This document shows positions 4,366-31,185 of a stretch of DNA of 64,000 nt, piece after piece. Under the pieces are notes generated by a model. It did not search any database. It was not told where the DNA came from and was given only the letters and a program-made list of their open reading frames with translations. Numbering within the stretch: the first letter of the stretch is position 1; each line of letters starts with the position of its first letter. This DNA comes from Macrostomum lignano (lineage: Eukaryota). Position numbers and translations under genes: made by a program. Location: positions 31,713-95,712 of the forward strand of contig NIVC01001528.1 of assembly GCA_002269645.1 (NCBI GenBank). Direction: 5' to 3'.

Positions 4366-4394
4366 CTTTCTGTGGCCTCTGGCACAACGCTAAG

Positions 4395-8896: not shown

Positions 8897-10097
8897 TTTC
8901 AGGTAGGTTCAGGTAGGTTCAGTTAGGTTCAGGTAGGTTCAGATAGGTTCAGGTAGGTTCAGGTAGGTTCAGGTAGGTTCAGGTAGGTTCAGGTAGGTTC
9001 AGGTAGGTTCAGATAGGTTCAAGTAGGTTTAGGTAGGTTAAGGTAGGTTCAGGTAGGTTCAGGTAGGTTCAGGTAGGTTCAGGTAGGTTCAGGTAGGTTC
9101 AGGTAGGTTCAGATGGGTTCAGATAGGTTCGGTAGGTTTAGGTAGGTTCAGGTAGGTTCAGGTAGGTTCAGGTAGGTTCAAGTAGGTTCAAGTAGGTTTA
9201 GATGGGTTCAGATAGGTTCGGGTAGGTTTAGGTAGGTTCAGGTAGGTTCAGGTAGGTTCAGGTAGGTTTAGATGGGTTCAGATAGGTTCGGGTAGGTTTA
9301 GGTAGGTTCAGGTAGGTTCAAGTAGGTTCAGGTAGGTTCAGGTAGGTTCAGGTAGGTTCAGGTAGGTTCAGGTAGGTTCAGGTAGGTTCAGGTAGGTTCA
9401 GGTAGGTTCAGGTAGGTTCAGGTAAGTTCAGGTAGGTTCAGGTAGGTTCAGGTAGGTTCAGGTAGGTTCAAGTAGGTTTAGATGGGTTCAGATATGTTCA
9501 GGTAGGTTCAGGTAGGTTCAGGTAGGTTCAGGTAGGTTCAGGTAGGTTCAGGTAGGTTCAAGTAGGTTTAGATGGGTTCAGATAGGTTCAGATAGGTTCA
9601 GGTAGGTTCAGATAGGTTCAGATAGGTTCAGATAGGTTCAGGTAGGTTTAAGTAGGTTCAGGTAGGTTCAAGTAGGTTCAGGTAGGTTCAGGTAGGTTCA
9701 GGTAAGTTCAGGTAGGTTCAGGTAGGTTCAGGTAGGTTCAGGTAGGTTCAGGTAGGTTCAGGTAGGTTCAGGTAGGTTCAGGTAGGTTCAGGTAGGTTCA
9801 AGTAGGTTTAGATGGGTTCAGATAGGTTCAGATAGGTTCAGGTAGGTTCAGAAAGGTTCAGATAGGTTCAGATAGGTTCAGGTAGGTTCAGATAGGTTCA
9901 GATAGGTTCAGATAGGTTCAGATAGGTTCAGATAGGTTCAGATAGGTTCAGATAGGTTCAGATAGGTTCAGGTAGGTTCAGATAGGTTCAGGTAGGTTCA
10001 AGTAGGTTCAGATGGGTTCAGATAGGTTCAGATAGGTTCAGATAGGTTCAGTTAGGTTCAGATAGGTTCAGGTAGGTTCAGATAGGTTCAGTTAGGT
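8897..10097. repeat. 10-bp tandem repeat (CAGGTAGGTT)n, about 120 copies
   Basis: Direct array. A single seed GTTCAGGTAGGT is present at the paralogous site near 3075-3086. Confidence 0.95.
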
Positions 10098-10709
10098 AGT
10101 TTTGCCGTCGAGATTTACGAGCGTTGCAATTTAGCATGCTATAGCATCTAAAGCATTGCCTGGGCCGGCTCTGAGCCACGGTGAGTAACGGCCTATCGCT
10201 CGAGAAATCACAAGACAAATCGCAAAGCTGTGCAAGGCAAAGGAAGATTGTTACAGCTGCATGTACTAGCTAATAACAAACAGATAATCCAGCAATTTTT
10301 ATCAATAGAGATTAAGGACTTTCTGGGAGGATTCAGAAACCGAAGATACCGGCAGCGGCTTTCGCTTGTAGCTTGCAGTGTTAATCAAGCGAGACAATGC
10401 GAGCTTCCTTTTATAATTGTTGTCTCTGTGCCGCTCCGTCAAGATGGACAACGGCAAGTTGAGCTGGTTTTGGTTTGCTGGTGACGATGCCAGCCTGCCT
10501 CAGAAGAATTATTTTCACCAAGTATCGCAAGTCGCTGCAACCAATGAAATTTCATCTGCGTCGCATACATTCACGCCATTGTTTCTTGTGGCAAATCGTG
10601 CATATACATGTAGGCCACATTTGCCTCAGAGGTATCTTGGCTTGCCTGCAAATCTAGTCAAAGGGTGTCCAGCAGCCTTCAGTCTGGCTGTAACCGCCGG
10701 TGCGCCAGC

Positions 10710-11464
10710 ATGCAGCACTCCGTGCACCTGATTGTCCTCCTATCCGTGCCTCTGGCCCTGCTGTTCCTGGTGGCGATGAGCCAGCCAAGTGTGCTGCATC
10801 ACGGATACATCGGCTGCTTTGTTGACAGCAGCAGCAACAGAGATTTGAAAGGCCTGACTGGGTTGAAGACCATTGGTCCTTTCACTGATAAGATAGAGTT
10901 CGCCTACTTTTTCAATGGATACACCGTCACCATCGAGAGCTGCAGCAGCCTCTGCGCCCTGGGCAGATTTCGCTACTTCGGTCTGCAGGCGCAAGGCTTC
11001 TGCTTCTGCGGCAACAGCTACGGACTGCATGGAGCCGCTTCATCAGATTCTGAGTGTAACAAAAACTGCTATGGAAACAGCAGCCAGATTTGCGGCGGCT
11101 TCGATAGAAACTCCATTTATGAGAACATCTATGCGCCCGGTAAGAAAAGTTTCCTGGTCATTTAGCTGACGATTCCTGCATCTGCATTTATCTGCATTTG
11201 TGCTGCTGCTCAGAGACCGGCCTCTTCAAGCGCGTGGCCTCAACCAAGTCGATGCTCACCACCGCGGCCGGACAGCCAGAGAACAGCACCTACTGGAGCC
11301 AGGAGGCCACGGTGGCCTTCGAGTGCCTCGCCGCCTGCCACCGCAGCCCGGACTGCCTCGCCTGCGCCTTCGTGCAGTCCAGCCGGATGTGCCACCTCAT
11401 GAGATTCGCCGCTGTGCCCGGCGAGGTCGCCAGCGAGGCCCAGTGGGTCTGGGTGAAGCCGTGA
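10710..11464 (+). CDS. WSC-PAN family copy 2: secreted protein, signal peptide + WSC + PAN/apple (226 aa)
   Basis: Exons 10710-11139 and 11214-11464, phase-1 74-bp GT-AG intron, open frame to TGA. PAN-like ECLAACHRSPDCLACAFVQSSRMCHL. Confidence 0.88.
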
Positions 11465-12240
11465 GCCTGTCTGACGACTGATAGTCTACCGTGAATAAAC
11501 AAGCATTAACAGTTACCAGCCCAGAACACGAACCTACAAAAGCTTGTTTGTATAAGTGAACGAGGTTTTGAGACAGGAAAAATTGAAGCATCAAAAAGAA
11601 CAGAACCTTTGCGGTCCCAGTTTACCACTGTAAGAACAAAATATTATAATAAATTCGACTATTGAGCTATTTATCGCATTGCATAAAAGAAAATCGCATT
11701 TTATTGTTAGTTACTTTTTCATCCATTTTAGTATCTAAGTAGATATTGATCATGGAAAATTCATTGATGTTGATCAATCAATTTAGTGTTCAATATTCCT
11801 GAATTTGCTAGTGTATAGTCGCCCCCAGCGGCAGCTCTGAGCGGTAGAAACCCACATGATGTAGCCTAGTGGTTGGAGCGGCGGACTCACAACTGAAAGA
11901 TTGGGGGGGGGGTTCAATTTCGACCTACTCTGGCGACCCCCCAGTCCTTGGACTGAACATCCCTGCGCAGCCTTCAGATGCGCCGCGCAATTGCTGCGGC
12001 TGAGCTTTCGGTTGCACATCTGGCCATTACGGTCGGTGCAAGAAAAACATATTGATATGAGTTGCCATCTAGATCTCAAATGTCCGCAGAATCTGCTAAC
12101 TGGCATCATCTATGATAGACATCACGTGTTTTAGGCTTAGCGACCTTGCTCCCCATCAATCTTCCAACCAGCATTATTGTCATCGCCAGGGTCAACAGGT
12201 GCTCATCATGTGATTCCATTCCTGGGCAAATCAGCTGCCG

Positions 12241-12676
12241 CATGCTGCATGCCTGGGTGAACTCGAACTTGAGTCTGTCAGCTGACATGCATGCCTGGGT
12301 GAGCTCGAACTTGAGTCTGTCAGCTGACATGCATGCCTGGGTGAGCTCGAAATTGAGTCTGTCAGCTGACATGCATGCCTGGGTGAACTCGAACTTGAGT
12401 CTGTCAGCTGACATGCATGCCTGGGTGAACTCGAACTTGAGTCTGTCAGCTGACATGCATGCCTGGGTGAACTCGAACTTGAGTCTGTCAGCTGACATGC
12501 ATGCCTGGGTGAACTCGAACTTGAGTCTGTCAGCTGACATGCATGCCTGGGTGAACTCGAACTTGAGTCTGTCAGCTGACATGCATGCCTGGGTGAACTC
12601 GAACTTGAGTCTGTCAGCTGACATGCATGCCTGGGTGAACTCGAACTTGAGTCTGTCAGCTGACATGCATGCCTGG
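12241..12676. repeat. 42-bp minisatellite, about 10 near-identical copies
   Basis: Unit GCATGCCTGGGTGAACTCGAACTTGAGTCTGTCAGCTGACAT, containing the palindrome TGTCAGCTGACA. Confidence 0.95.
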
Positions 12677-12939
12677 TAAGACAAGTTTAGAAAGCGTAGA
12701 AAAAGCAGGAAAGAAGCTGAAAAGCAGCAATGCTTTTGTTTCAATAGACCATCTTCGTTGCTGATGAGAATCTGCTGCCTTTATTGCTCCAGCCCTTACT
12801 TCTAAATTCACGATTTAGAAGATTTAGGAGACTTGTTGCTGAGAGTTGTGGGGAACACTGTGCTTCCCAGTGACTGAAGCGAGCGATTCCCTGCGGCGTT
12901 GGGAACGTTCTGACAGTCTTGCGACTCTCCGCGGCTTCT

Positions 12940-13672
12940 CTCAGTCAGTCCTTAGGACTCTTAGCTGTAGTCAGGAAAAAGAAAAAAACATTTTTTCTAT
13001 TATTGACGCCAGTGAATCAACTTTATTCTTCTTCTACAGTAAAGAATACATTTAAAAAACTTAGTAGCTACTTTCAGTAGCAAAATAAGAGTCAGACGGG
13101 GTAGAAACTTTTATTGGTGCAATTTTTGTACTTACAGCATAGTTCACGAAGTGTAACAACCTGCTGTACAGGGGAGATTCTGCTGCACAGTTTTGGGGTC
13201 ATCGTGTGGTTGATGCACACAAATTATGTGCAGAGTGCAATTGTGTCTGAATCTGTTTGAATCAAGCATGCTTTTTACAATCAGTGTTGAATCAGTTCAG
13301 TTACAGTAGTCAACTAAGAACAGGTAAAGAACGCATTTACAAACTACTTTAAGTGCTTAAGTGCTAATTAATTAAGCGCTTTCTTAACAGATTTTACAGC
13401 TAAGTTGCAAATGTTAAAATTCTGCTGTTGAACTCTTTGTTATAGTTAGAGGCAAGGGGCCGTGTGCACCCTGGCGCACTTTAAGCGACATAGGCACACA
13501 ACCGACGAGAGGCATTACTGCCCATTCCGCCGACTCCCCTGAGCAGGCATACAAGCGTGCGGATACGCCCAGGCACACACTCACACAGGAGTGTACAGCG
13601 GCCCTAACTTTATATTATCGTTAGGCATGTACACTTCACTGCGCCTTGGGGGGTTGGCCCTCAAGGCCGTTA
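12940..13672 (+). mobile_element. Decayed DNA-transposon 3' end, piggyBac-like (copy B)
   Basis: Remnant CAECNCV*ICLNQACF resembles the piggyBac C-terminal Cys-rich domain. Ends GGCCCTCAAGGCCG followed by TTAA. Homologous to 4395-5060. Confidence 0.45.
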
Positions 13673-13719
13673 ATTGCACGAGCAGAGCCAAGCCGAGATT
13701 CCAACTTGGCCCAAGATGA

Positions 13720-13799
13720 ATGTGACTGCACTTGGAATCGAGCCTGGTCCGCTGGCACGCGAGAGCGGCCGTGATAGACCACTTAGGCTACGGTCCCCC
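13720..13799 (-). mobile_element. tRNA-derived SINE head
   Basis: The minus strand has an A-box-like TAGCCTAAGTGG and a B-box-like GGCTCGATTCC at tRNA-like spacing, but no convincing acceptor stem. Confidence 0.35.
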
Positions 13800-14675
13800 G
13801 CTTTCTGAACTCGCTTTAGATTTGGTACGAGCGTAATTTCATGCTTTGTTTCTCTGAAAGAATTCCCACCCCCCCCCCTATTGACTCAAGACCGTGACGG
13901 ATTTGAGCCGTGTGGTGCTTCATCCATCAGGCATCCAGAAAAAATCCGATCAATGATGCACGCCATTCGCTTTCTCTGAAAAAAACGCTCGACTCCCTAC
14001 CCAGCTTAAAAGAACAATGCCTGGTCACGTGTTCATTTTGCAAGGAGACGAATTGTTTTCCAGCTCTGCAAATCTTCTGAGCAGCTCACGCTCATCCTTT
14101 TTAATTCACGCTGAGAGGCCGTGAGAGATGTTTTTCACGCTATGTGGAGCAGGTTGGATCTGGTAAACACTGGGAAACTTTCTTGGGAAAATGGGATCGA
14201 AACAGTTGATTCGTGACTGGGAGACGGGGGGGATCTGCCACGTGACGAAATAGGAACTGCCAAACTGGGTAGAACGTTTTCACCTTGCATTGAACGACGC
14301 TGTAAAGAAACTTTCAATTATACTTCAAGCATTCACTACAACGAAAGCTCTACTACTCTCAGGCAGGTTCGGTGACACAGGCTTAATTGATGCTCTGCTC
14401 ACAAGATAGAAGCCCGAGGGACAGAGTTTCTTGCCCCAAAAAGTTTGTGTAAACTCGGCATCGATCATTGCCTTTCCTCTTCTTTTTTCTGATCCAACTT
14501 TTTTAAAGCCGCGTTTTGTTGACACACGTTGCCGTGACAGCAGCGGCAACAGAGTGAGACTGGGGCTCATGATCTAACAAATAGTCTCATGGGCCAATGA
14601 GACTCGAGTCTTCTAAAGTTGCAAGAGAATATATGGGGGGACTTCACGATCACGGACTGAAGGCTTGAATTCATT

Positions 14676-15515
14676 AGCTATTGCACTCGATTGGTGCCTT
14701 AGCTGCAGGCATTTGCACTCCATTGGTGCCTAAGCTACAGGCTATTGCACTCGATTGGTGTCTAAGCTGCAGGCTATTGCACTCCATTGGTGTCTAAGCT
14801 GCAGACTATTGCACTCCATTGGTGCCTAAGCTACAGGCTATTGCACTCGATTGGTGTCTAAGCTGCAGGCTATTGCACTCCATTGGTGTCTAAGCTGCAG
14901 ACTATTGCACTCGATTGGTGTCTAAGCTACAGACTATTGCACTCCATTGGTGTCTAAGCTACAGACTATTGCACTCCATTGGTGTCTAAGCTGCAGACTA
15001 TTGCACTCCATTGGTGTCTAAGCTGCAGACTATTGCACTCCATTGGTGTCTAAGCTACAGACTATTGCACTCCATTGGTGTCTAAGCTGCAGACTATTGC
15101 ACTCCATTGGTGTCTAAGCTGCAGACTATTGCACTCCATTGGTGTCTAAGCTGCAGACTATTGCACTCCATTGGTGTCTAAGCTGCAGACTATTGCACTC
15201 CATTGGTGTCTAAGCTGCAGACTATTGCACTCCATTGGTGTCTAAGCTGCAGACTATTGCACTCCATTGGTGTCTAAGCTGCAGACTATTGCACTCCATT
15301 GGTGTCTAAGCTGCAGACTATTGCACTCCATTGGTGTCTAAGCTGCAGACTATTGCACTCCATTGGTGCCTAAGCTGCAGACTATTGCACTCCATTGGTG
15401 CCTAAGCTGCAGACTATTGCACTCCATTGGTGTCTAAGCTGCAGACTATTGCACTCCATTGGTGCCTAAGCTGCAGGCAGGCTATTGCAATCCATTGGTG
15501 CCTAAGCTGCAGGCT
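14676..15515. repeat. 32-bp minisatellite (GCTGCAGACTATTGCACTCCATTGGTGTCTAA), about 26 copies, abutting the copy-3 ATG
   Basis: Direct array. The last partial unit GCTGCAGGCT runs straight into ATG 15516. Confidence 0.95.
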
Positions 15516-18500
15516 ATGCAGCTGACGCACCAGAAACTGCTGGCAGCTCTGCTGTCACTTGGCAGCCTGCTGGTATCGGCACAGCTGGCAGTCAAGTCCG
15601 TCAGCTACATCGGCTGCTTCGTTGACCTCAACGACAGCTCCAGGGACTTGACGGGTCTGTCGGGCATCACCCGGATTGGCCCCTTCAGCCAGATCAACCC
15701 CGCGGGGAGCCACCTGTTCCGCTTTGACATGACCATCGGCAGGTGCGTCAGGCTGTGCTCGCTCGGCCGGTTCAGGTACCTCGGCCTGCAGGCCACCGGC
15801 TTCTGCAGCTGCAGTCGGAGCCACGGCTCCCACGGGCCGGCCTCCGAGACCGAATGCAACCGGAACTGCACGGGCCATGCCAGACAAATCTGCGGCGGTC
15901 TGCTCAGGAATTCGATTTACGAACTGGCTTATGAAGACGGTGAGCGAGCGATCGACTCTGGATTGTTGAGCACAATTAAAAGCGAATCTTGAACAGCTAA
16001 TTTCTACCACTAAGGATTAAATTGCTTGCTCCCAGGGACAGTTGGTTCGGAAGACTCTACAATCATGGGCAGCTGTTTAGATTGAAGCCCCATTGAAACG
16101 CACTAAATTTCCTACACTTCAAATTTGTGCTCAGCGAACAATGCTAGGAATTCCCATTGTGAAACAAACACGTCCTGCGACTTTATAAATCAATGTTAAA
16201 TCAAGTGTAAACTTCAAACTGTAAACTATAAAATAAATAGAGTTTAGTATTTGTCAGTGAGAGTCAAAATAAACAATCAATATGGATAAAATTGTTTTTG
16301 ACAATCTAAATGATAATTTGGACACTCAACATGAGACACGCATACAGCGAGCTGCAACAACTTGCTGGCAAACTCGTATTGGCCATGGAGTCCGTGGACA
16401 ATCTAATCGATGAAAAGCCGTTCTAAATGAGAATTCGGACATTCAAAATAATAAAATGCCATTCTAAGTGATAATTTAAGCTGCCAAATGTTTTCAGCAA
16501 TTTTTTGGATTTTTAACTGATTAACGGAACAAGAACTCAACAAAAAGTCAATCTAGAGTGATTAAAAGGCAGAAGAACTAAAAACAAAGGATGGCAGCAT
16601 TGGCAGCTGCAGTACCCTTGCTGCCTCTTTGATGGAGTGCCCCGCGTTAATGGCATCGATCAGGCGACGGCGATCTGCTTCACTTGTTTGAGGCGGCATT
16701 CTGCTGCTGATGTGTGTACGTTTTGCTGCTGCTGCCGGTGCGCGCGATGAGAGAAATTCTCATTTAGAATGGTTGGTTATTCGTAAGTGAGACTTTAGGA
16801 TAATAGTCCGGCTCATGAGTGCGCGCAGCGCACGAGTGAGCATAGGACTATTATCCTAAAGTCTCACTTACGAATAGCCGCATTGTCGAATTTCAGTGGG
16901 GCCATAGACAAAAAGGGCATCGAAAGGAGAGAGGGGTTACCGAGGAGAGAGAGACATAAAGACTGAGGTGGTTTACTGGAGTTTGGGCCATAGACAACGA
17001 GGTTGCAAACAGGCTGGGGGTTAAGAGGGTGGAAAGGAAGGAGATGTGGAGAGAAAGAGAGAATAAAACGTAAATAGCTACATTCGCTTGGCCATGGAGA
17101 ACCAGACGTCATATCCGATCAACTGGGGCAATCTGCCTGTCGAAAGTTTAGCCAACGTATCTAGCAGCGAACTCAATTGGATCTCAAGACTTTCCACATC
17201 TCAGAAGGACATGAAGGATAACGAAGACTTTTTGAACTTCTTGCACTTTCTTGAGACCTGGAATCGGCTGGGCATTCGATGAGCGAGATCATGGCTATCA
17301 CGGGTCAAAAGTCCGAGAGCACGGTCCGGCGCTACCTGGCAGTTAAACGGGACAAGTCCCTGCAACAATGCAGCGATGCAGTGTCGCGTGCGTTGAACAT
17401 GGGACAAAGCGCCGCGACCCACGGTCAAGTAACAATGCCTGCTGACATCAGCATCCAAAGTTCCATCGTGCAAGAAGCAGTGAGCGTGTCTGATGGTCGT
17501 CAGATGAACGGTCGGAATATCTTTATTATGAACAACTGCACTTTCAACAATTGCAATCTGTAATGGTCTTCGGCACTATGACAATTGCGCCATATTGATA
17601 CTGCACAATTAACTTTCCATAGCGCTAATCTTTTGTTGTTGGTGCTTGCTGTTTTGTTCTAAAAATAGGTGTCCATTATCCCGAGTTTGAAATCATCATC
17701 CTGAAGTTTAAGTGAAAAAATAAATAAATGTGCTCACGGTTTAACCATAGACGATTGCATTATCCTAAAGGCTGATTTTTGACAATGGCTTTTTATCGAT
17801 TAGATTGTCCACAGACTCTGTCCACGGAGCGAGCTGCCGCAGCCATAGAGCAGCCATAGAGTGTTTCTCGTTTGAATGTCCAAATTATCATCTAGATTGT
17901 TAAAAACAATGGTGCACCACCCAGAAACTCCTCATATGGGCATCGAATAGAGCAAAACTCGTGCCATGCGCATGTTACGAAACTTTGAATTGACCCAGGT
18001 GCCTTCCACATCTGGTGACTTTGGTTCAGACCACAGACTAATGTCACATCAAAGCCACGTCAGCCATATCTTCTCTTGGGCTCAGATCATAGACTATACT
18101 CAAGAAGAACTCTTAGAATTGTTTGCTGAGCCAAGGACCCGCCCTCGGCCTGATAAAAACGCATCCTCGGACTTTCTTTTCCATAGAACGATTTATTATC
18201 GCGTGTAATACTATACTCATGGTTCAAATCATGGGTTTCAACCATAGACAGTCTCCGCAGACCGCGAAATCGCCACGAAAAGACTGCTGAAATTACAGTC
18301 ATTGTCTTTTAATTCTGACAGCGGGCCCCAATTCTGCAGTCGGGCATCTGTGGCGATTTCAGTTCGTATCGTATTTTTGGTAGCCGTTCTCCACTTCAAT
18401 TGCAATCCTCTTGGTTACAGAGCAGAATTTAAAAATCCAAGCCATAATAGACTCGAAGCAGCTGCGATTTGCATTTGTCGATCTGTCTCACAATGCATTC

Positions 18501-19084
18501 CTTCGGAGCTTATGTTTTTAACTCTTCTTTTTCTTCTCTTCTCTTGTTTCTCTTATTTACAGTCTCGAAAATTTGTCTATGGTCTGAATGTACAGAGAGT
18601 ACAAAGAATGGACAGACGCTCTGCCCCCACAGCCCCGCTAGCAGCGGTAAATATCTATGGTAAAATATATGGAACCTCCCATTTCTGCCCACACAGAGGG
18701 GTAACATGGGCATGAACAAAAAGTTCTTCAAGTAAACTACTGTATTTCTTAGGATGCATATTGCTGAGAAATTACTTGCAGTTTTATGGTATCCCGAATT
18801 GTCGTCAACAATAAAACAAAGCCTCTGGTATTTCAGCAACTGGCGGCTTCAAGACGCTGCCAGCAGCATCGCAGCCTCTGGTGTCTGACCCAGGATTCAG
18901 TGTCAGCACTCACTGGAGTCTGCCCGCCTCCGTGTCGCTCGAGTGCCTCGCCGCCTGCCACCGCAGCTCGGACTGCCTCGCCTGCGCCTTCGTGCAGTCC
19001 AGCCGGATGTGCCGCCTCATGAGATTCGCCGCTGTGCCCAGCGAGGTCGCCAGCGAGGCCCAGTGGGTCTGGGTGAAGCTGTGA
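15516..19084 (+). CDS. WSC-PAN family copy 3 (223 aa), with a transposon-expanded 2.9-kb intron
   Basis: Exons 15516-15939 and 18837-19084, donor G|GTGAGC, acceptor TTTCAG|, phase 1, frames compatible. Signal peptide + WSC + PAN. Confidence 0.8.
16290..17912 (-). mobile_element. Element bounded by about 130-bp inverted repeats, containing a Tc1/mariner-like HTH fragment
   Basis: 16290-16420 and 17780-17912 are diverged inverted copies (ACAATCTA(A/G)ATGATAATTTGGACA..GTGGACAATCTAATCGAT). The minus strand at about 16590-16710 reads MPPQTSEADRRRLIDAINAGHSIKEAARVLQL. Confidence 0.45.
16778..17770 (+). mobile_element. Internally deleted Crypton-like tyrosine-recombinase element
   Basis: Frame LESAGHSMSEIMAITGQKSESTVRRYL..NNCTFNNCNL resembles YR box II plus a Crypton-type tail. 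32-bp perfect palindrome arms at 16778-16809 / 16845-16876. Direct repeat ATTATCCTAAAG at 16850 and 17759. Confidence 0.55.
18241..18583. mobile_element. Possible MITE with short ACCATAGACA / TGTCTATGGT inverted termini
   Basis: 10-bp inverted termini. The same CCATAGAC motif also recurs near 16901, 16989 and 17744. Confidence 0.3.
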
Positions 19085-19770
19085 TCCTTGACTGAGCCGT
19101 CATTTAACAAAAATTCCCAAATTAATTCACTGTTCTGCAATAGAATTAAACCCGTGCCAGTGCCCTGATGGGGAAAATTGTCACAATTAGCGCATGTAAG
19201 TGTGGCTACTACGAGTAGCAGAGAAGCGTAAAACTTCGATTTTTTGCACCAAACGAGCTATAAAATTGGAATCGGTTCGAAAATCTTTTATAGAAACAAA
19301 AAACTACAGTTGATCCACTCAAGCACGGGAGCTCAGTGTCTCGGTTTTTATGTTCCCATAAAATTAAAGTTCTCATCGGATTAGCTACGGAGGAAGGCAC
19401 AAATGCGTCTCTTCTATTTTACAGTTGCTATTAGCAACTGAAAATCTGTATAAAAAGACAAAAGATGCAGGCGCTCCTGCCAGTCTCGTACGGTGGTAAC
19501 AATGGCAAGCCATGCATCCGGGGCTCTTTTTGTTGAGTAGCAGTGAAACATGGATCGTGTGACTTCAATGCAGGAAAAATCTGCAGAAATATTCAATCGG
19601 AGTGCGAATCGATATCCGGTGCGCTAAACGGCTCAAGCCATTATTGCAGAGCACGTCTGACACAATGAGGCCGCCATCAATGGCTACAGGTGGAACCGGA
19701 GACCGGAAAGGCTGCAGTTTCAGCCTATTGCGGTTGTGGATTCCCTCAGACTCTCAGGGGTTCGGTTGAC

Positions 19771-19778
19771 TATATAAG
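19771..19778 (+). promoter_or_regulatory. TATA box upstream of WSC-PAN copy 4
   Basis: TATATAAG lies 70 bp upstream of ATG 19841. Confidence 0.45.
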
Positions 19779-19840
19779 TAACTCCTGACAGCCCTCAACT
19801 CGGAGCAGCTCGCCCACTGGCCCCGGGCCCAGGCTCCAGG

Positions 19841-20938
19841 ATGTTGCCTCTCTTGCTGCTCCTAGTACCAGCAGCCCTGAGCACAATGGTGAATGCTCAA
19901 GCAACAATTAGCCACTCAAACTATATCGGTTGCTATGTGGACGGGGACGACACCAGCCGAGACTTGACCGGCATGGCGCCGTTTTCCACCTTCGCGTCCA
20001 CGAGCGTCGGGTCCGGCATTCTGTACAGGCCGGACATGACCGTGTCCATGTGCGGCAGGATTTGCGCTCTTGGCAGATTTCGCTACTTCGCTCTACAGGC
20101 CACCGCCTTTTGCAGCTGCGATTCAACCTACGGCAGCCACGGATCCGCAGCCGAAGCCGACTGCTACCAGGACTGCGCTGGCAACGCGTCGGAGAAGTGT
20201 GGTGGACCCTACAGGAATTCCATCTACGAGAATGTCTACCAGCCTGGTACGAGCCCGCGTCTAGGAGGCTTTAAAGCCTTCTTTAAAGAAAACTAAAGCC
20301 TTAGCTGTTCTTTGTTGCGTAGCCACCTGAATAGCTAAAATCCCTCTGGGAAATCTTGAGAGGTCTAACTATGGCTGAAGAACTAAGTTCCATGAATATA
20401 TTCAGAACAGAGTCGTGAACAAGGACTACATGTACTAAAGTAGAAGGACGCAACACTCGAAGTTCAGAAGCTCAGTGTCGTCTATGTTAGCCAAAGCTTA
20501 GGGACGACTGGTCATGTACTCTGGAGGCAGTGCAAGACTGCGAAATACCGGTACGAGCACAGAAGAGACTCTAGATGATGCGCGAACGTATCGTATTTGT
20601 AGAAAGAGCCTTTTTATTTAAGACTAGAACGCCATGGTTAAAAGGTCCTCACTCCCCTACCCCGCAATTCTTCACTTACAGTCGGTTCAAAGTTCACCAA
20701 GGCCGCCTCGAGCTCCAACAGCATCGTGAAAAACGCGGGCCAGTCAATCCTGACCCACTGGAACGACACCTCGCCATCAGCCAACAGCCAAATTAAATGT
20801 GCGGCCACCTGCCAGCGCAACCCAACCTGCCTCGGCTACACCTTCGGGCAGTCCAGCCGAATCTGCTGGTTGACGACCTTCGCCTTGGCGCCCCCGATCG
20901 TCGCTGGCGAGTCGGCCTGGATCTGGATGAGGAACTGA
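19841..20938 (+). CDS. WSC-PAN family copy 4 (220 aa), with a divergent PAN domain
   Basis: Exons 19841-20246 and 20682-20938, phase-1 GT-AG intron. Signal MLPLLLLLVPAALS, WSC motifs, PAN-like KCAATCQRNPTCLGYTFGQSSRICWL. Confidence 0.85.
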
Positions 20939-21199
20939 AGCTGGAAACCAGCAACTTCAAGCGAAGCGATCACTCGACTGCGACACAGACAAGTTTTTGA
21001 ATAGCAACGCAATGAGCAAAAATAAACAAAAATATTTTTTCTTGCAACCTACTTTTTATGCATTCTGGAGTTCTCTTTTCTTAGAAAGACTTTCTCAAAA
21101 CGAAAAAAACCTACTAAAACTACCAGAGCCACAAATAAAAAAAACGGTGACTCATCGATCCATAACTTGACGTTTCGAACGTTACAACAACAAAAAAAA

Positions 21200-21660
21200 A
21201 ATACGCAACTCAGAAAAGTAAAGTCATGCTGTCAACGTGCGTCAAATAGAGAGCCGCAACGCGGTGTCGGGCGCCCCGGCGTTGCACAGCAGGAAGTCCA
21301 CATGTATCGAAAGGTTCGCCTGGCCCTCCTAAATGGGCCCCGTGAAGTATATAAGCAGCAGGATGGGCAGCAGCTCTCGGTCCGGATCTCGTGGCCCGCC
21401 GGCGCAGGATGGTGGACGGGCGTGGTAGCTGGGCCCTCAGGCGCAGGTCTTGGTCCCGACTCTCTCGTCAGCTCGAAAGGCGGCACGGAGCAGCTCCGAG
21501 CGCGCTGAGTCCAGCTGCCGTTCCAGAGTGGCCATCGGCGTTCACGTCTCGGCGTTGTACAGCAGGACGGTTTCTACCACCGTTTGTCACAGCCGTCGAG
21601 CCCTCTGGCAGTCGGGCAGAGCATCGGACTGAAGGACAGCCCGGATGGATGGGTACCCTG
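21200..21660 (-). pseudogene. RTE-clade LINE 3' fragment
   Basis: The minus strand reads TVVETVLLYNAETWTPMATLERQLDSARSELLRAAF, matching the VLLYGxETW motif after RT in RTE-type LINEs. Contains stops. Confidence 0.6.
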
Positions 21661-22843
21661 CCAGGGGCGAGCCCTTAAGTCTAGAACGTACGAAAAGGTT
21701 GTTATGAAGTCGTTACGTCGTTACCACGTTACGAAAAAGTCGTGTATCGAAACTTTTAGACGTTTCCTACGGCTGTTTGTTCCATTTAGTGTTAGCTTTC
21801 CAGCCCTTTGGAAAACGGTCTCGACCACCACCGAAAAAATTCATTGTATTTCAGTCACTTAGGGTCACACGGACTTTCACGCACAATGGCCCCGTGCGCT
21901 GCCGTAGATCGCCGTAAACATCGGAGACCAGCTAGACCAGCGAGGCACATGAACCGCTGACATCGTAGAAGTTCAGTCACGATGGTTTCCTGGATGCTGA
22001 CAATTAGGCCAACGCATATACAGCAGCAGACTTAACCCCAACCGAAGTCGTTTTAGAAAGTTTTTTAAAATCCTTAGAAATGACCCAAAACAGTAAATTT
22101 GAGCTCCGATAAGCATCTAATTTACGGGGACCCAAGCGCAAAGACTTCTAAAAGTTTAAAACGACCTTCTATTGATATCCCTGGAAGAACCTTGAAGCTT
22201 TTTTCGAAAAAGCATTCGCTGCGGTTGATTGAAAAAAATTGCTTTTGTTCTGAAACTCCATTTTTCAAGCAGAAATTTGCTATAAAAAAGTCAATAGGCT
22301 CAGTAAACGGTGCAACCAACAACGGAAGTAGGGAGCCGGTACATTAGTTTCATTTTTTTCTACTAACAACCTCTGCTGTCTGCACCCAACTATGGGATTG
22401 ATGTTGGTCGTATCGGCTATAGGGAGGCGCAGAGCTGGGGAACTCGGCAGCCCGGCCCTTCAGTTGCTGTAGGGCGCTGTTGAGGCGCTGCCAGATTACA
22501 AGCACGAGCGTATTACCCAATCAGCAGAGACTAGAAATCCCTAAATTCTCCTCTTAACAAAAGACTTGAAAAATGCTTATGCTCGTAAGTTCTGGCTTAG
22601 CCTTTAGAACAGGCGGGAAAGGCAGGCAACAGCAGCCTGAGGCGTCAGCGCAGGGTAAGCGTCCTTAGTACTCAACACACGCGCTACATGTACCCATAGC
22701 ATGTGCATTGTGCATTTACATGTAATTTATGATGGCAAACACTCCGCACTGCAGTTAGTATGTGCGTTAAATGAAGCACGTCTTTTGAAGGAGTTATTGT
22801 TGGAGTTGAAATACAAAAAAATCAGGAAGACCGAATATAATGC

Positions 22844-23671
22844 TGAAGTACTTATGGTTGTCTCGGGGTTGTCTCGAGGTGGCCTGGTAGGTCTTTGAAT
22901 CACACCGCTGCCACCAATGAAGTACTTATGGTTGTCTTGGGGTTGTCTCGCACAGTGATTTGGGCTCTCCGTCTTCTCAACCGGAAGCCTTCTATTAGCT
23001 CTTAGTAGCGTAGGTATAGTGCTGCCACCAGTTCCTTCACGTCTCGGCCTTCGATGAGGTGAGCTTCCCGTCGGAACGAAATAACGAAGTCAACGAACAC
23101 AGCACCGGGTGCAGATTTGCAGCTCAACGTATCAAGCGTCTCGTCAGCAGCACCTGCCGGGCTTGGTTGGTACAGGGAGGGCTGAGTTAGCCTCTCGTAG
23201 GCTTGGGGTTTGCTTTAGTAGGGTTTCAGACAGACCAATAGCAGAGAACTCAAAGTACGCAGACGTGCGGTCAGTACAGACACTCGGGCTCGGAAGCTTA
23301 GAACTCGAGAAACAAGAAACTCAGTCAGAAAACTGGAAGCTCCTTGACGGAAACAAGGGGGTGTCCTATTTATAGCCGGGATTCTCCCGCGCACAAGACC
23401 TCGTGACTTGTTCTATTTTTCAAACTGACGTCACTTGAGGTCTCGAGGCAGGGTCCTAGCGCACGCAAGACCTCGTGACTCGTTCTATTTTTAGAACTGA
23501 CGTCACTTGAGGTCTCCGGCCAGAGTACACGCAGCTGTGACTCAGTTGCTATTTTTAGCAACATGAGTCACTCCTCTCCTTAGAGAAGGGAGGGGTCCGA
23601 AAGCACGTGATTCTCCCGGTAAACAGGACCAGCGAGTGCAGTAAACATGTTGTCATGAATGTGTTATGACA
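22844..23671 (-). mobile_element. LTR-like sequence with primer-binding-site-like motif (deleted LTR retrotransposon)
   Basis: Minus strand TGTCATAAC (23671) ... TACTTCA (22918), then TGGTGGCAGCGG (PBS-like). TATA-like CTATAAATAGG near 23366-23376. The last 33 bp of the LTR are repeated at 22844-22876. Confidence 0.45.
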
Positions 23672-25384
23672 GTGTGCTCTTTGCTAAGTTGCTGCACCGG
23701 GCCAGTGGGCCGTCCTCTCCCCCCCCCCTCGTTAGATATTTTCTGACTCACCCACCTGCACTTCTGCGCGTGCGTACCCCTCCCCTCCCTGCCTAGACCT
23801 TTTCTGTTGAGTCAACCCCCCATGCTCTGCGTGCGACCCCCCCCCCTGTGCGACCCCGCCCCATTATTTTGTTAGCTTTGCTGCCCCGCCCCTGTTTGTG
23901 ATTGGCTGCCAGTCCCAGTCTGCCGTGCTACGCCCCGGCGATTGGCTGGTACAGCTCATGCGTTGCCTTGGCTGATGTCTAAGCCCCCTTTTCTGCCTTT
24001 ATCCCGCGCCCTCAACCCCCAGTTTGCTGCCTATTTATTCAGAGCCCCTTGAGACCCCATTCTCGTCGTCTTCGTGGCTCCTCGGCGATTGTACCAGCGT
24101 TGGTTGCTGAATTGCTATTCCTCGCAGAATTGCTAGACAAATATATAAGTAAAGAATATCGAGATCACCACTGCTCTGACGGCGCTGTTTCTTGTACGAC
24201 TGAAATCGCGGCTGGTAAGCCTTCCAATTTGCACGTCATTTGGGTCTGCCTCTGTACTAGGCACCTTAGAGGGATTAAGTGCGTCGTACGCCGGTCCCAC
24301 CCCAAGCAGCTCTGCGTCGTACGCGAGTCTGTAGGCTGTCGTGCGTCGTACGCTCGAGCAGCCTAGTCCCGACGGACACCGCGTCGTACGCGTGTCAGTG
24401 GAGGACCGTAGCCAGGGTCAGTACACGAACCCGGGTCTGGGAAAGGGGCACGAAAGGACCGAGCCCTTGAGCCCCATCATCACAATGTTTACTGCACTTT
24501 AAGACTCCAAGAACGCAAGATCTGTCATGTGACTTGCTCACAAGACAGAGGAAAACGGGACGGGAACGAAACAAAGACAGCCCACAGCAGAGAAGCTGAG
24601 GGCTGAGAACAGCAGCACAGAAAACGAACAGCAAAGGGGGAGAGGGTGGCAAGCAGACAGACAAAGGGAGGCGGGAAGCTGACCAGCGGCAGACAGCAAC
24701 CCGGGGAAGGCGCGGGCAAGGGAGGCTGCTGACAAAGTGTGACGCCTAACACTAAAACTAGCGGCTCACTGCAATGCTAATTAATGCTCTCACAAACTAC
24801 TGAAAGTAAGACTTAAGAACGGACCACGCCAAGGAGGGCTTTGGGTCTCCCTCGCTCGTTTTTCTAAGCAGAAGTCACGGCATCACAGTGAAAACCATGG
24901 GTAGAGCCGTAATGTCCTTTGTCCACAGCCGGTGCAGAAGGCGCTGCTTCTGACTCTGCGGGCCGACTCCGGCACCCTGTTTGACGCTGTTTATTATTTA
25001 CGAAGCAAACGAAAAGAGCAACCACATGTAGAGACTTGTTTGTCACCAAATTTCTCAATATTACTCGTATATTTTTCAATGATTTTCAATGCAAAAATAT
25101 TGAATAATCTTTGCTGGAAATCCATCTTGGCGTTGATGATGCAACAGAAAATAACTCTGATCAGAGAAAGTCACAGCAGAGCAAGCAAACCGGAAATCAG
25201 CCGCCAGTAAGTTAATCAAAGCTCAAAGCTAATCATTTCCAGCATCAAACTTCAGTTTAGAAGTGCCTTTATTAACTTTAACAGAACAGAGAATTAAGAG
25301 GAGTAGGCTAAAAAATACAAAGATTTTAATCAAGGAGGGGCTCTGCTGTTACGGACTGCTCAAGTTCAACTCATCGCTCACTGA

Positions 25385-26139
25385 TCACAGCTTCACCCAG
25401 ACCCACTGGGCCTCACTGGCGACCTCGCTGGGCACAGCGGCGAATCTCATGAGGCGGCACATCCGGCTGGACTGCACGAAGGCGCAGGCGAGGCAGTCCG
25501 GGCTGCGGTGGCAGGCGGCGAGGCACTCGAAGGCCACCGTGGCCTCCTGGCTCCAGTAAACCCTCCGGACCAGCATTTCGGGCACGGTGATCAGAGCGAT
25601 TTTGGTTGAAGCCATCGACTTGTAGGACCCATTGGCTGGAGTTTAACGAATAAATAAACCTTATTTTAAACAAAAACATTGTCAACAGCCACATCGCTGA
25701 ACTCACCTGTTGTGTAGATGTTTTCATGCAAACTGATTTTTTTGGTCCCACCGCAGGACTGTGAGTTGTTTCCGGCGCACTTCTTAACATCACAGCCTCC
25801 ACCGTTGCACGGCGGAATACGCTGCACAGTCGACCCGCAGACGCACTCGCTCCCATCGCGCAGACCGAAGTAACGAAATCTGCCCATGGCGCAGGCGCCA
25901 CTGCAGAACTCGACGGTCATGTCGTCTCTGTCAAGGACGCCTCTAACAAAATCAACATCATAGGCACCAAGAATTGCCACACCCGTCAGCCCGTTCAAGT
26001 CCCCATGCGAGCTGTTACCGGAAGTGTCCAGGCAGCAGTCCACGTGGTTAATGAATTGCACAATGGGCTGCCCGAACACCGAGGCAGCTGTCAAGAGTCC
26101 AACAGCCGAAGTGAGCGAGATGAAGGCCGATGGCGACAT
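25385..26139 (-). CDS. WSC-PAN family copy 5 (227 aa), with a highly divergent WSC
   Basis: Exons 26139-25707 and 25635-25385, 71-bp phase-1 GT-AG intron. Signal peptide, WSC (MTVEFCSGACAMGRFRYFGL..CVCG..CAGN..SCGG) and PAN. Confidence 0.85.
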
Positions 26140-26266
26140 TTCTGTCGCAGTTTAGCAGCGAGAGGGGAATTTCACGGAGAACATCTGGCCTGGCCGCTTA
26201 AATGCAGTTGATGCTGAATTTGCAGCTCTTTTACTTTATTGGTTGCCAGGCCCCGATGCTGAAATG

Positions 26267-26280
26267 GTTGCTATGGAAAC
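26267..26280. promoter_or_regulatory. RFX X-box upstream of copy 5
   Basis: GTTGCTATGGAAAC, 128 bp upstream of the minus-strand ATG. Confidence 0.5.
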
Positions 26281-27051
26281 GATGCCGCTGTGCGTACAAG
26301 CCAGGCCCGTATGAGATATTTGCATAATCGAAATCAAGTCCCAAGTTTCGGCCTTGATGAAATATGGGAGACTTTTAAGTGGTGACAGCGCCGGTGTGTG
26401 AATGCTTTATGAGTTGCCACTCATTTTCTTGCGAGCGTGATCAATACTTGACTTCAATCTCTCACTCTCACACAGTCACTGACGTAAAAAATCGTGTGAA
26501 CGTGCGTGATTTCGGACATTTTACGAGCTACACTGTACTTACAAGTCAGTGTCCCTCAGTAATGTCCCTCAGTAATACTTTTCAACTATAATATTCAACC
26601 ATCGCTATGAGCCTTGATAATTATCTTTGCAAAGAAAAAAAACCAGAATAAAAACTTCATGCCTTGTTGGGCGGTTACAGCGGAAAGTTTCGCAAACTGT
26701 CTTGTCACACAACCATGCTCTCCACGAAGTGACAGTCGTTGTTCCGACAGGAGTCACAAGATGCTCAGCTTCCTACCAACAAGCATCATTCACATGTGTT
26801 CAAAGGGAAGCAGAGCGGAGCTGCAACAGGAAGTGAAGACTGCCTTCGGTTTGGATCGATCACAGTTTATCACGTCTCCACAACTTTTGTTAAAGCATCA
26901 GTTGCAGTGTTCCATTCTCAGTGAGCACTCAGCACCGGGCATGATCCGGTCTTGGAGCCGCTGCTTCGGAAGACAAAAGTTTGCAGCTGCAGGACGCGCG
27001 GCTTCCTCTTGGCTTGGCTCAGTTTATCACCTGGCATATCAGCAGGCAAGT

Positions 27052-27187
27052 GCAATATCAGCAATCATGAATGCAATATCAGCAATCAAGAATGAAATAT
27101 CAGCAATCATGAATGCAATATCAGCAATCATGAATGCAATATCAGCAATCATGAATGCAACGTCAGCAAATATGAATGCAATATCCC
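27052..27187. repeat. 21-bp tandem repeat (ATATCAGCAATCATGAATGCA), about 6 copies
   Basis: Direct array. Confidence 0.9.
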
Positions 27188-27903
27188 TCAAGTTTTTAGT
27201 TCTTAGGCCGAAAACACAGACAAAGATCTGCAATGCCGCCGTGAAAACTCTTTGTTCCGTCATTCTACTTTTTAGTGTTTCTGTGCTCGAAGCTCCCTAC
27301 TGGGGCCTCGCTCAAGCAGAAGCTGTGAAACAATTTGGGAAAGCAGCACCACATATCTGCTTTTAGCTCGTATTTAAAATATTGAGGCACTTTCGAGTTG
27401 ATCTTATGATATGGTGAAGTACTGTATCTGATATATGCCTCGGTAATTCTCGTATAAATTAAAACGAAATTGCTCTGATTACACCTTACTACTGTTTCAG
27501 TAGCATAAGTCAGTTTTAGATGCAAAAACTAGACGGCGAGTTGGATTTTCATTATTCACCAATTCTAACTATAAGCTACTTATTACGAGCTACTAAAATG
27601 TTAATCAACACAGCATCGGAGTTACGAGTAGCCAATGCATTTTTTGCCAAAAGGTCAAACTCGTACTAATCATGAAGTCTCTACATGCATTGTATTTGTT
27701 ATATAGCTCGCACAGGCATTGAAGCAGAGAATGTAATCTATAAACTGGCTCATACCAAAGCAGAGAGGCAATAAATATAGTTCAGAAAATATTGTCAATA
27801 TTGTCAATATTTCATCGGATGTTGCGCCAAAGAGCAGCTACCGGTGTGCAGAGGCTTCATGCCTAGAGAATCTACCAAATGATCAGCGACAGACCATCGC
27901 AGG

Positions 27904-28669
27904 TTACTCAGTGTACAGCTTCACCCAGACCCACTGGGCCTCGCTGGCGACCTCGCTGGGCACAGCGGCGAATCTCAGGAGGCGGCACATCCGGCTGGAC
28001 TGCACGAAGGCGCAGGCGAGGCAGTCCGGGCTTCGGTGGCAGGCGGCGAGACACTCGAAGGCCACCGTGGCCTCCTGGCTCCAGTAGGTGCTGTTCTCTG
28101 GCTGTCCGGGCGCGGTGGTGAGCATCGACTTGGTTGAGGCCACGCGCTTGAAGAGGCCGGTCTCTGAGCAGCAGCACAAATGCAGAAAAATGTAGATGCA
28201 GGAATTGTTAGCCAAAAGACCCGAAAATGTTCTTACCGGGCGCATAGATGTTCTCATAAATGGAGTTTCTACTTTGACCGCCGCACTTCTGGCTGCTGTT
28301 TCCAGTGCAGTCTTCGTTACACTCAGAATCTGATGAAGCGGCTCCGTGCAGTCCGTAGCTGTTGCCGCAGAAGCAGAAGCCTTGCGCCTGCATACTAAAG
28401 TAGCGAAATCTGCCCAGGGCGCAGAGGCTGCTGCAGCTCTCGATGGTGACGGTGTATCCATTGAAAAAGTAGGCGAACTCAATCTTATCAGTGAAAGGCC
28501 CAATGGTCTTCAACCCAGTCAGGCCTTTCAAATCTCTGTTGCTGTTGTCACCATCAACAAAGCAGCCGATGTATCCGTGATGCAGCACACTTGGCTGACT
28601 CATCGCAACCAGGAACAGCAGGGCCAGAGGCACGGATAGGAGGACAGTCAGGTGCACGGAGCGCTGCAT
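27904..28669 (-). CDS. WSC-PAN family copy 6 (230 aa)
   Basis: Exons 28669-28237 and 28163-27904, 73-bp phase-1 GT-AG intron. Closely related to copies 1 and 2. Confidence 0.88.
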
Positions 28670-28936: not shown

Positions 28937-30319
28937 CAGCAAAACACAAGCAGCTCAGCTCCCCCTTTGTCCATCTTGACCATGCAGCAGAGAGACAAGA
29001 AACAAAGCTCGCTTTGTCTCGCTTGATTGACACGGCTGACAGTTTTTCTCAGCCTCCCTAGGTAAGGTGGTTTAATCTCCATACAGTCATGCGGCTTGCC
29101 CACAGACCTGTATCTGCACTCCCACAGGGCAGGATGAATGACACGGCTATGGCAATTTCCTGAATCTGCACGGATCGCCTTGAGGAAGTGGATCCGAGGC
29201 GCGCGCGAAGAACTGCTGCGGAGTTCTCTCCACGGCTGCTTCTCCTAGTAGCAGCTTTCTTCTGCTTCGCACAGCAACGCGGGTGGTCGCGCGATTTCTC
29301 CAGCGCTGGAGGAAGCGCTGCCGCTCCGAGCAACCCCAGGGAGGTCATTGTTAAGCTACACAAAACCAAGTGAAGCTACGGATGGCAGCTAATACAAAAA
29401 ATTGAAACAAAAGACAGCAGCAAGAATGCATGGCATGCCTTGTCAGAGAACTTCTAAAAAGATTTTAGCACACATCATCAGCCTTCTTAATTTACTGAGC
29501 AGCTGTCAACAAAGCAGTCATAGCTTCGATCTTGGGTACTGTAAAATGGAAAAAGCGCTACATAATGAAGAGTGCGAGTTGAGCATGATCGAGCATTTTA
29601 CTAATGCACTGATGGTCCTCCGAAACATTCAAACTGATGGACACCTGAAGCATCTCATTCACCAGATGAAAACAGTAACCTTGACCAAGAAGCGTCTCAG
29701 GGTCATTTGCGTCGCCCCGGAATCGTTGCAGGGACACAGGTAAAATAGGAAAGTGACTCAAGACGACTCTCAAACGATGAGATGTCACAGTACAAGTCGC
29801 CATAAAAAATCGCCTTATAGTTAATTTGAGGCATTGTCTGCAACTCTGAATTCTGAAACGATTATGGGGCGCTTCTACATGTATAATGACTCTGGGGCCA
29901 TGGAGTCGTACCTGATAAATACTAGAGTCCGAGTAGAGCCACTGAGTTGCGTCAAAAGTGCATCTGCATCGCTTTATGAATCAGAATCGCATTTTGCATT
30001 TATATAACAAATTCGCTATTCAGTCAATTTGGGTTAGAAAAAATTAAGCGCTCTTGGACGATTTTTTCGCGAACTGTTACGATTCTGAAACTCAGATGAT
30101 GCGTCCATGACTCAACAGTCGCATCTCCGTTCCATTTACAGTCGGTTGAGTCGTTAAATAATTAATAATAATAATAATAAACAGTCATAAGAGTCGTCCC
30201 AGAGTCGCCAGAGCCACTAGTGAACTGTTGGCAAAGATTCTTTTAGCGAATCTTTTCACGGTAACGTTTTCAACTGGTTAACCCGACAGACACCCGAAAC
30301 ATCCCACTCGAATTCAACC

Positions 30320-31185
30320 CCATGGACACCTGAAACATTCCATGCAACCTAATGGACACCTGAAACATTCCATGCAACCTAATGGACACCTGAAACATTC
30401 CATGCAACCTAATGACCTAATGGACACCTGAAACATTCCATGCAACCTAATGACCTAATGGACACCTGAAACATTCCATGCAACCTAATGGACACCTGAA
30501 ACATTCCATGCAACCATATGGACACCTGAAACATTCCATGCAACCATATGGACACCTGAAACATTCCATGCAACCATATGGACACCTGAAACATTCCATG
30601 CAACCATATGGACACCTGAAACATTCCATGCAACCATATGGACACCTGAAACATTCCATGCAACCATATGGACACCTGAAACATTCCATGCAACCATATG
30701 GACACCTGAAACATTCCATGCAACCATATGGACACCTGAAACATTCCATGCAACCATATGGACACCTGAAACATTCCATGCAACCAAATGGACACCTGAA
30801 ACATTCCATGCAATCTAATGGACACCTGAAACATTCCATTTAATCTAATGGACACCTGAAACATTCCATGCAATCTAATGGACACCTGAAACATTCCATG
30901 CAATCTAATGAACACCTGAAACATTCCATGCAAGCTAATGAACACCTGAAACATCCCATGTAACCCAATGGACACCTGAAACATCCTATGCAACCAAATG
31001 GACACCTGAAACATCTCATGTAACCCAATGGACACCTGAAAAATCCCATGCAACCAATGGACACTTAAAACATCCCATGTAACCCAATGGACACCTGAAA
31101 CATCCCATGCAACCAATGGACACTTAAAACATCCCATGTAACCCAATGGACACCTGAAACATCCCATGCAACCCAATGGACACCT
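30320..31185. repeat. 30-bp minisatellite (GGACACCTGAAACATTCCATGCAACCATAT), about 28 copies
   Basis: Direct array with a homogeneous centre and diverged edges. Confidence 0.95.

Follow-up and report, generated by a model that had tools for sequence, protein, structure and literature searches.

A cluster of six paralogous genes was found in a 64,000-nt stretch of the Macrostomum lignano genome (assembly GCA_002269645.1, contig NIVC01001528.1, positions 31,713 to 95,712 of the forward strand; hereafter, the window) by a tblastn search with the protein of the second copy as the query. The genes, designated c1 to c6 (Table 1), are arranged head-to-head, with c1, c2, c3, and c4 on the plus strand and c5 and c6 on the minus strand. 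Each gene model contains one phase-1 GT-AG intron at a homologous position. Exon 1 carries the signal peptide and the WSC domain, and a PAN/Apple-type module follows in exon 2; the protein is about 225 residues long. The main feature of the cluster is that the 3' part of exon 2 is almost the same in c2, c3, and c5, silent sites included, whereas the rest of these genes is strongly diverged.

The last 144 nt of c3 (18941-19084) differ from the corresponding segment of c2 (11321-11464) at four positions in a direct comparison. The last 174 nt of c5 (25385-25558) match c2 (11291-11464) with four mismatches (97.7% identity, BLASTN), in this case as the reverse complement. Both counts agree with the first-pass annotation of this DNA, and the peptides quoted there are right against the gene models; however, it missed the minus-strand position of c5 and c6. 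A chance result is excluded: with the baseline that would favour chance most, an 18% divergence seen in this segment of an unlinked paralog, four or fewer differences in 144 nt have a P of ~1e-8. Outside the shared tracts, the picture is different. Among c3, c4, c5, and c2/c6, 42-55% of the exon 1 nucleotides differ, and the proportion of differing silent sites (pS) is 0.64-0.81. The pairwise distances between c2, c3, c5, and c6 are 0.014-0.043 in the tract versus 0.42-0.55 in exon 1. The distance matrices of exon 1 and the tract disagree, and silent divergence is not uniform along the genes, as the earlier suggestion of conversion had implied. The WSC exon and the beginning of exon 2 had been described as barely alignable; this is correct for DNA, but the exon 1 proteins align with 37-51% identity.

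The change from divergence to identity is sharp and occurs inside exon 2. Immediately 5' of the tracts, 45-48% of sites differ between c2 and c3 and between c2 and c5. The maximum chi-square method places the c2-c3 border after c2 position 11318 (236/523 differences on the left, 4/143 on the right) and the c2-c5 border after position 11290 (233/489 and 4/171), both with a permutation p<=2e-4. The identity of c3 starts at TCGAGTGC (c2 11319, c3 18939), and that of c5 starts at TACTGG (c2 11291), directly after four mismatches in a row. These are the EC and YWSQ starting points read by eye in the first pass. It was missed there, however, that both borders are located within the PAN domain and not between the two domains. 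A GENECONV-style test of the runs of identical polymorphic sites gave p<=2e-4 for five pairs (c2-c3, c2-c5, c3-c5, c3-c6, and c5-c6). In the tract from EC to the stop codon, c2, c3, c5, and c6 differ at 2-6 of 141 nt with a pS of 0-0.095; in the pairs with c3 or c5 but without c6, pS is 0-0.03. Taken over the shared tracts, pS is 0-0.05. The four tract copies are thus not identical, and almost all of their differences are private to one copy.

At the 3' side, the similarity detected by BLAST ends 1-4 nt past the stop codon, close to where it had been noted before. No significant similarity of the 3' untranslated regions (UTRs) was found in any of the 15 gene pairs by Smith-Waterman comparison with shuffled sequences; the lowest value, p=0.02 for c3-c5, is not significant for 15 pairs. 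A weak similarity between c2 and c6 after the stop codon, seen by eye, was withdrawn (p=0.5). Given that the 3' UTRs are not similar and the similarity ends so close to the stop codon, the shared segment represents a patch and not the product of a crossover. The reading frame and the length are kept across the patches, and c3 and c5 retain their own 5' parts of exon 2, introns, and UTRs. The c4 gene, which had been said to have escaped, is indeed not homogenised, with 65% identity in the tract segment.

Table 1. Genes of the WSC-PAN cluster, shared tract segments, and proteins of the second cluster copy.
Feature	Position in the window	Strand	Description
c1	exons 3756-4182, 4256-4365	+	c2-like, truncated; C-terminus YWSQDASGPW*; without PAN core
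c2	exons 10710-11139, 11214-11464	+	full WSC+PAN gene; 100% identical to UniRef A0A1I8IHA2
c3	exons 15516-15939, 18837-19084	+	diverged paralog; intron of 2897 nt
c4	exons 19841-20246, 20682-20938	+	diverged paralog; equals UniRef A0A1I8II33
c5	exons 26139-25707, 25635-25385	-	diverged paralog; model equals UniRef A0A1I8IGA5 exactly
c6	exons 28669-28237, 28163-27904	-	inverted c2-like paralog; model equals UniRef A0A1I8IGY7 exactly
Reference tract in c2	11291-11464	+	YWSQ... to stop codon
Patch in c3 (putatively converted)	18939-19084	+	..L|ECLAAC to stop; 4/143 differences vs c2, 2/143 vs c5
Patch in c5 (putatively converted)	25385-25558	-	..RRV|YWSQEATVAFEC to stop; 4/171 differences vs c2
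Tract-equivalent segment in c6	27913-28086	-	97.7% identical to the c5 patch
Second cluster copy			A0A1I8IFZ0: c2' exon 2, c3', c4', antisense c6'; A0A1I8IH79: c5'; A0A1I8IHK9: c6'; A0A1I8GV09: c2'

The genes c1 and c2 are located within a larger tandem segmental duplication (1076-5062 versus 8101-13677) with a flank identity of 72-84% by BLAST, and c2 and c6 are the arms of an inverted repeat of 1.1 kb (10375-11462 versus 29036-27915; 86% identity), 16.4 kb apart. The homology of c2 and c6 starts 335 nt upstream of the ATG and stops exactly at the position of the stop codon. In c6, the stop codon TGA is replaced by TAC (27904-27915), and the protein is longer by LYTE*. The truncation of c1, overlooked in the first reading of the sequence, results from a deletion of about 1.6 kb, equivalent to c2 11321-12939, with its junction at 4349-4390 on the plus strand; the PAN core and the 3' flank are lost. 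The differences between the copies are mostly CpG transitions.

The homogenisation of silent sites was measured against a baseline. The PAN core of the putatively converted copies has a G+C content at third codon positions (GC3) of 0.91-1.00 versus 0.65-0.83 in exon 1, and silent divergence in the PAN core is compressed because the codons almost all end in G or C. An unlinked paralog, m7 (P0007; GCA_002269645.1, contig NIVC01000038.1, locus L001, gene at L001 10001-10750), was used for calibration together with c4. Compared with the cluster genes, m7 and c4 have a pS of 0.33-0.43, mostly about 0.35-0.40, in the PAN core (0.55 in one 14-codon window), and their exon 1 is saturated. With such a baseline, the tract should have about 11 silent differences, while 0-1 are seen (P ~2e-5). 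The silent-site homogenisation is therefore real and exceeds what protein constraint produces, as had been argued at first sight. An older conversion of c4 might be read from its PAN pS of 0.35-0.41, but a GC3 near 0.9 explains this value at least equally well, since the unlinked m7 has the same one.

The same comparison makes clear how strongly the C-terminus of the protein is constrained. The last 33 residues are kept in m7 as CAFV.SSRMCRL.RFAAVP.EVASE..WVW.KL. For the last 33 codons of m7, the proportion of differing non-synonymous sites (pN) is 0.10-0.12 and pS is about 0.38; in exon 1, pN reaches 0.39, and in the linker about 0.65. Since these residues are conserved despite the silent differences, ordinary purifying selection explains much of the constancy. 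At the nucleotide level, m7 and c2 are 82% identical from EC to the end (the longest exact run is 16 nt), 55% identical in exon 1, and 33% identical in the linker; the old subfamilies are 52-56% identical in exon 1 and 33-51% in the linker. In c4, which lies 757 nt from c3, the PAN protein itself has diverged, with a pN of 0.35.

The proteome contains a second copy of the whole cluster. Its c3' and c5' proteins, in which about 4-5% of the residues are not those of c3 and c5, have exactly the same junctions, AVSL|ECLAAC and VRRV|YWSQEATVAFEC, which indicates that the mosaics are older than the cluster duplication. In PMC12869490, a recent whole-genome duplication in M. lignano is described. The LYTE* extension of c6 is also present in A0A1I8IHK9, so the change in the c6 stop codon likewise predates the cluster duplication. 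The A0A1I8IFZ0 protein (P0020, 1656 aa) is an annotation artefact, a fusion of cluster genes with antisense c6' and with antisense translation of the pyruvate carboxylase region next to the cluster. It is nevertheless useful evidence for the second cluster copy, and the join of exons 1 and 2 of c3 is found in it as well. The recurrence of the junctions in the proteins of the second copy gives indirect support to the reality of the c3 and c5 junctions in the organism.

Several observations bear out the earlier description of the process as recurrent. The divergence of c1, c2, and c6 falls from 16-20% in the shared upstream 335 nt to 4-13% in exon 1, 3-12% in the intron, and 0-1 differences in the first 77 nt of exon 2. 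At the Met/Leu site of the RL(M/L)RF motif, three of the four gene pairs differ between the two cluster copies, and the residue covaries in the adjacent c2 and c3 genes. A rough estimate for three independent hits at this site is P ~0.005, and the reshuffling points to exchange after the cluster duplication. In another subfamily, P0047 (A0A1I8HUC0) and P0048 (A0A1I8G8W0) have about 55% identity in the WSC domain and an indel-rich linker, but they are about 95% identical from LPTSWS, the place homologous to the YWSQ border of c5, to near the C-terminus. Between P0007 and P0008 of the m7 subfamily, a switch lies at GCAFVPSS.

Exchange is not restricted to the PAN module. At least 12 c2-like proteins with this PAN version are present in the proteome. 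A set of ten c2-like proteins has 300 pairs of informative sites, of which 152 are incompatible; compatibility is higher for sites close together than for sites far apart (permutation test of the pairwise homoplasy index type, p=2e-4). This incompatibility extends across the whole protein, so that short-tract exchange shuffles WSC sequences too. The c2-like paralogs across the genome (P0002-P0005, P0013-P0018; c1, c2, and c6) are mosaics of a small number of alternative patches such as GDN/-SN/-SS, NEDCTG..K..QS, QELCVG, and MA/VA.

The WSC domain (PF01822) was identified in c2, c3, c4, and c5 with 42.8-54.3 bits at a cut-off of 27.8 and E values of 1e-11 to 1e-14 (1.6e-14 for c2). It also matches the WSC domain of Kremen1 in the PDB (E 1.4e-11), which was the sole match of the PDB sequence search; the PAN part had no match there. 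The PAN_1 profile (PF00024) scores 23.3 bits for c2, 22.4 for c4, 23.1 for c5, and 18.3 for c3, the cut-off being 21.4; the matches are confined to profile positions ~20-56 of 76. The four core cysteines of PAN (C-x3-C ... C ... C) are present, and among distant relatives, true multi-PAN proteins come nearest to exon 2. The WSC domain itself has a PAN/Apple fold (PMC9024836), so the cluster protein would be a tandem of two modules with the PAN fold. For c2, an AlphaFold2 model built on a 10-sequence alignment (mean predicted local distance difference test score 44, predicted template modelling score 0.28) is too poor to judge the fold. The two-exon WSC+PAN architecture was not found outside M. 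lignano in the databases searched. Judging by these comparisons, the cluster family is specific to Macrostomum lignano and comprises small, secreted WSC+PAN proteins.

Many prostate-limited putative seminal-fluid transcripts of M. lignano are given as encoding WSC domains in Table S1 of Weber et al. 2018 (PMC5977470) and in Patlar et al. 2019 (PMC6953679). A comparison with 36 primers (18 published RNA interference pairs for prostate-limited transcripts) revealed no match in the window or in L001 with <=3 mismatches allowed; it covers 18 transcripts, the other 58 screened transcripts being outside it. With 0/18 primer pairs matching, no identity of the cluster genes with these 18 transcripts was found, and the seminal-fluid identity is only a lead.

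Based on the mosaic structure, its borders, the silent-site homogenisation, the junctions of the second cluster copy, and the family-wide protein conservation, we consider it highly probable that c3 and c5 received their tracts from the c2-like subfamily by interlocus gene conversion, with tracts limited by the surviving homology. The c3, c4, c5, and c2-like genes are old subfamilies with saturated silent sites in exon 1 and unalignable introns and UTRs. Later, short non-reciprocal copying during homologous repair would have overwritten the 3' 146 nt of c3 and the 3' 174 nt of c5; the donors were probably the numerous c2-like genes, as their copy number suggests. Exon 2 was likewise homogenised among c1, c2, and c6. 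The PAN core, made up of a helix and disulfide-bonded strands, is apparently under strong purifying selection, most of all in the last 33 residues, which together with the G/C-ending codons would hold it about 80% identical between diverged subfamilies. Heteroduplex formation and resolution would then be possible only in this core, and a tract would end where homology ends: 5' at the variable linker with its many indels, and 3' at the stop codon. Every conversion would renew the identity and ease the next one, while c4, with its diverged PAN protein, would no longer be a substrate. The inverted arrangement of c2 and c3 relative to c5 and c6 would permit intrachromatid exchange without deletion. 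The high GC3 is compatible with long-term GC-biased conversion.

Several points weigh against this explanation. The donor, direction, and dates of conversion are inferred. The stop codon is the 3' end of all three or four tracts; homology limitation would explain this, although another fixed feature may be responsible. Three borders are located within 30 nt, which could mean a local break hotspot and not a loss of homology. The very high GC3 weakens silent-site tests in the tract segment. Finally, the few tract differences are mostly non-synonymous (four non-synonymous and no silent ones between c2 and c3); such an excess is unexpected for a strongly constrained module, although several of them are CpG transitions.

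The original proposal went further and saw a variable/constant design in which conversion maintains the C-terminal module while the N-terminal domain diversifies. In its adaptive form, selection re-imposes one PAN module, e.g., for docking to an invariant partner, on WSC domains that diversify for varied glycans. Part of this proposal holds, and as a description of the pattern it is reasonable: conservation of the last 33 residues extends through the family, the unlinked paralog included, and a similar switch, from about 55% to 95% identity just before the first PAN cysteine, is found in P0047/P0048, with a further one at GCAFVPSS in the m7 subfamily. The ratio of non-synonymous to synonymous substitution rates (dN/dS) of the WSC domain is also high among recent copies (0.56-1.0), and the prostate-limited WSC transcripts, as presented in PMC5977470 and PMC6953679, belong to a class expected to evolve fast. 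However, dN/dS never exceeds 1, and its highest values involve the truncated, pseudogene-like c1. Conversion is also seen within the WSC domain of close copies, the tract differences are mostly amino-acid changes, and the PAN module of c4 has diverged with an intact frame, so a uniform PAN is not obligatory. The surviving homology accounts for the localisation of the tracts more simply, and purifying selection on the C-terminus with homology-limited conversion suffices; adaptation is not demonstrated. We regard the adaptive architecture as possible but rather unlikely.

A one-step origin of chimeric genes by partial duplication, unequal crossing-over, or replication template switching is less probable still. 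The left breakpoint of the c1 deletion and the c3 border lie within about 2 nt of each other beside the 13-nt palindrome GGCCACGGTGGCC (11305-11317), a plausible site of template switching or breakage, and minisatellites are interleaved with the cluster. Nevertheless, both patch borders are in frame within colinear homologous sequence of unchanged length, c3 and c5 have kept their own parts of exon 2, introns, and UTRs, and the 3' flanks are not shared, which excludes a single crossover.

The palindrome is located between the c5 border and the c3 border with the c1 deletion, and its relevance is unproven. All three borders (c5 at 11290/91, c3 at 11318/19, and the c1 deletion at ~11321) lie shortly upstream of the first cysteine of PAN. 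A rough scan-statistic estimate gives P ~0.006 for such tight clustering of three borders placed uniformly; homology decay combined with selection on viable products could cause the clustering. In m7, the last 28 nt of the coding sequence including the stop codon (unit GAGGCTGAGTGGGTCTGGATGAAGCTGT) form a 17.8-copy minisatellite (L001 10721-11219), which begins within the final codons and extends about 470 nt beyond the stop. Because the borders cluster at GGCCACGGTGGCC, P0047/P0048 switch at a homologous place, and m7 has this 3'-end minisatellite, one may speculate about a built-in recombination cassette. Its fixed borders would be a break-prone site shortly before the first cysteine of PAN and a recombinogenic 3' end, and it would repeatedly graft one "constant" PAN core onto the divergent WSC modules of several subfamilies in a fast-evolving secreted, possibly seminal-fluid, family. 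We consider such a cassette improbable.

An assembly or polishing artefact, in which c3 and c5 were corrected by c2-like reads or paralogs were collapsed, might be suspected in a genome presented in PMC12869490 as highly repetitive and recently duplicated, but it is very improbable: the tract copies differ at 2-6 private sites, the sequence next to the borders on the 5' side is 45-48% divergent, so that reads would not mis-map there, frames and splice sites are intact, and both junctions recur in separately annotated proteins of the second cluster, which are 4-5% different elsewhere. Hardly more credible is a functional RNA or DNA element (a structured RNA, a small-RNA target, or an antisense gene) fixing the silent sites, to which the silent-site identity and an antisense frame that is open across the tract and included in the fused UniRef model might point; the RNA fold of the tract is no better than that of shuffled sequences (z=0.10), no Rfam match was found in the 64-kb window, the protein module is the same in c4 and the unlinked m7 but differs there at many silent sites, and the c3 and c5 borders differ.

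Other elements of the window can be listed briefly. The unusual length of the c3 intron is due to an element of about 1.6 kb (16291-17910) with ~135-nt terminal inverted repeats (16291-16427 and 17779-17910; 88-92% complementary), which looks like a non-autonomous DNA transposon. Minisatellites are interleaved with the cluster at 7513-7984 (23-nt unit), 8898-10097 (10), 12246-12676 (42), 14678-15517 (32), 27051-27185 (21), and 30315-31191 (30). The 32-nt array, with 26 copies, reaches the ATG of c3 (15516) and leaves no ordinary promoter-proximal sequence. Downstream of the cluster, at ~32000-44100 on the minus strand, pyruvate carboxylase-type exons are located (Pfam PYC_OADA, Biotin_carb_C, CPSase_L_D2, and Biotin_carb_N). 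Two regions, 51454-53199 and 59362-61105, contain long open reading frames on both strands with a GC skew of -0.55 and +0.60 and without Pfam matches; they are probably low-complexity repeats and not genes.

Interlocus gene conversion, our preferred explanation, is a well-known process; the cluster is a new example of it in a lineage-specific family and offers no new mechanism. In the literature searched, no paper was found linking Macrostomum with gene conversion in a WSC-PAN family. The case would make the reach of the process quantifiable: paralogs with saturated silent sites swap patches of about 150 nt where selection keeps about 80% identity. In M. lignano, family trees and dN/dS need to be computed per segment, and whole-gene orthology calls mislead. 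If the family does consist of seminal-fluid or immune-type lectins, WSC shuffling with PAN homogenisation would bear on repertoire evolution.

The WSC domain is common to the cluster protein and to Kremen1 and yeast Wsc1; compared with these and with canonical PAN/Apple proteins, the cluster protein has no transmembrane segment, kringle, or CUB. The prostate-limited WSC transcripts come from the same species and, like the cluster, represent small secreted WSC proteins of multi-copy genes, but none of the 18 published primer pairs matches the cluster. In abalone, all VERL repeats but the first two are homogenised, and these two diverge under selection; in trypanosomes, the conserved 3' ends of VSG genes guide segmental conversion. 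As in the cluster, one part of the protein is uniform by conversion and another differs between copies. The likeness is in pattern only; the cluster shows no sign of positive selection, programmed switching, or the use of an expression site. The classic cases of interlocus conversion are the primate gamma- and alpha-globin genes, the red and green opsins, the MHC, KIR, and the arms of the Y-chromosome palindromes. The WSC-PAN cluster differs from them in being a lineage-specific flatworm family known from assembled sequence alone, in having tracts that cross subfamilies whose silent sites are saturated elsewhere, and in that all its tracts end at the stop codon. In other respects it closely resembles the classic tandem and inverted families: near-identical tracts of about 150-200 nt, silent sites included, are shared by diverged paralogs a few kb apart, direct and inverted partners both take part, and the tracts are located in the best-conserved coding segment with elevated GC3.

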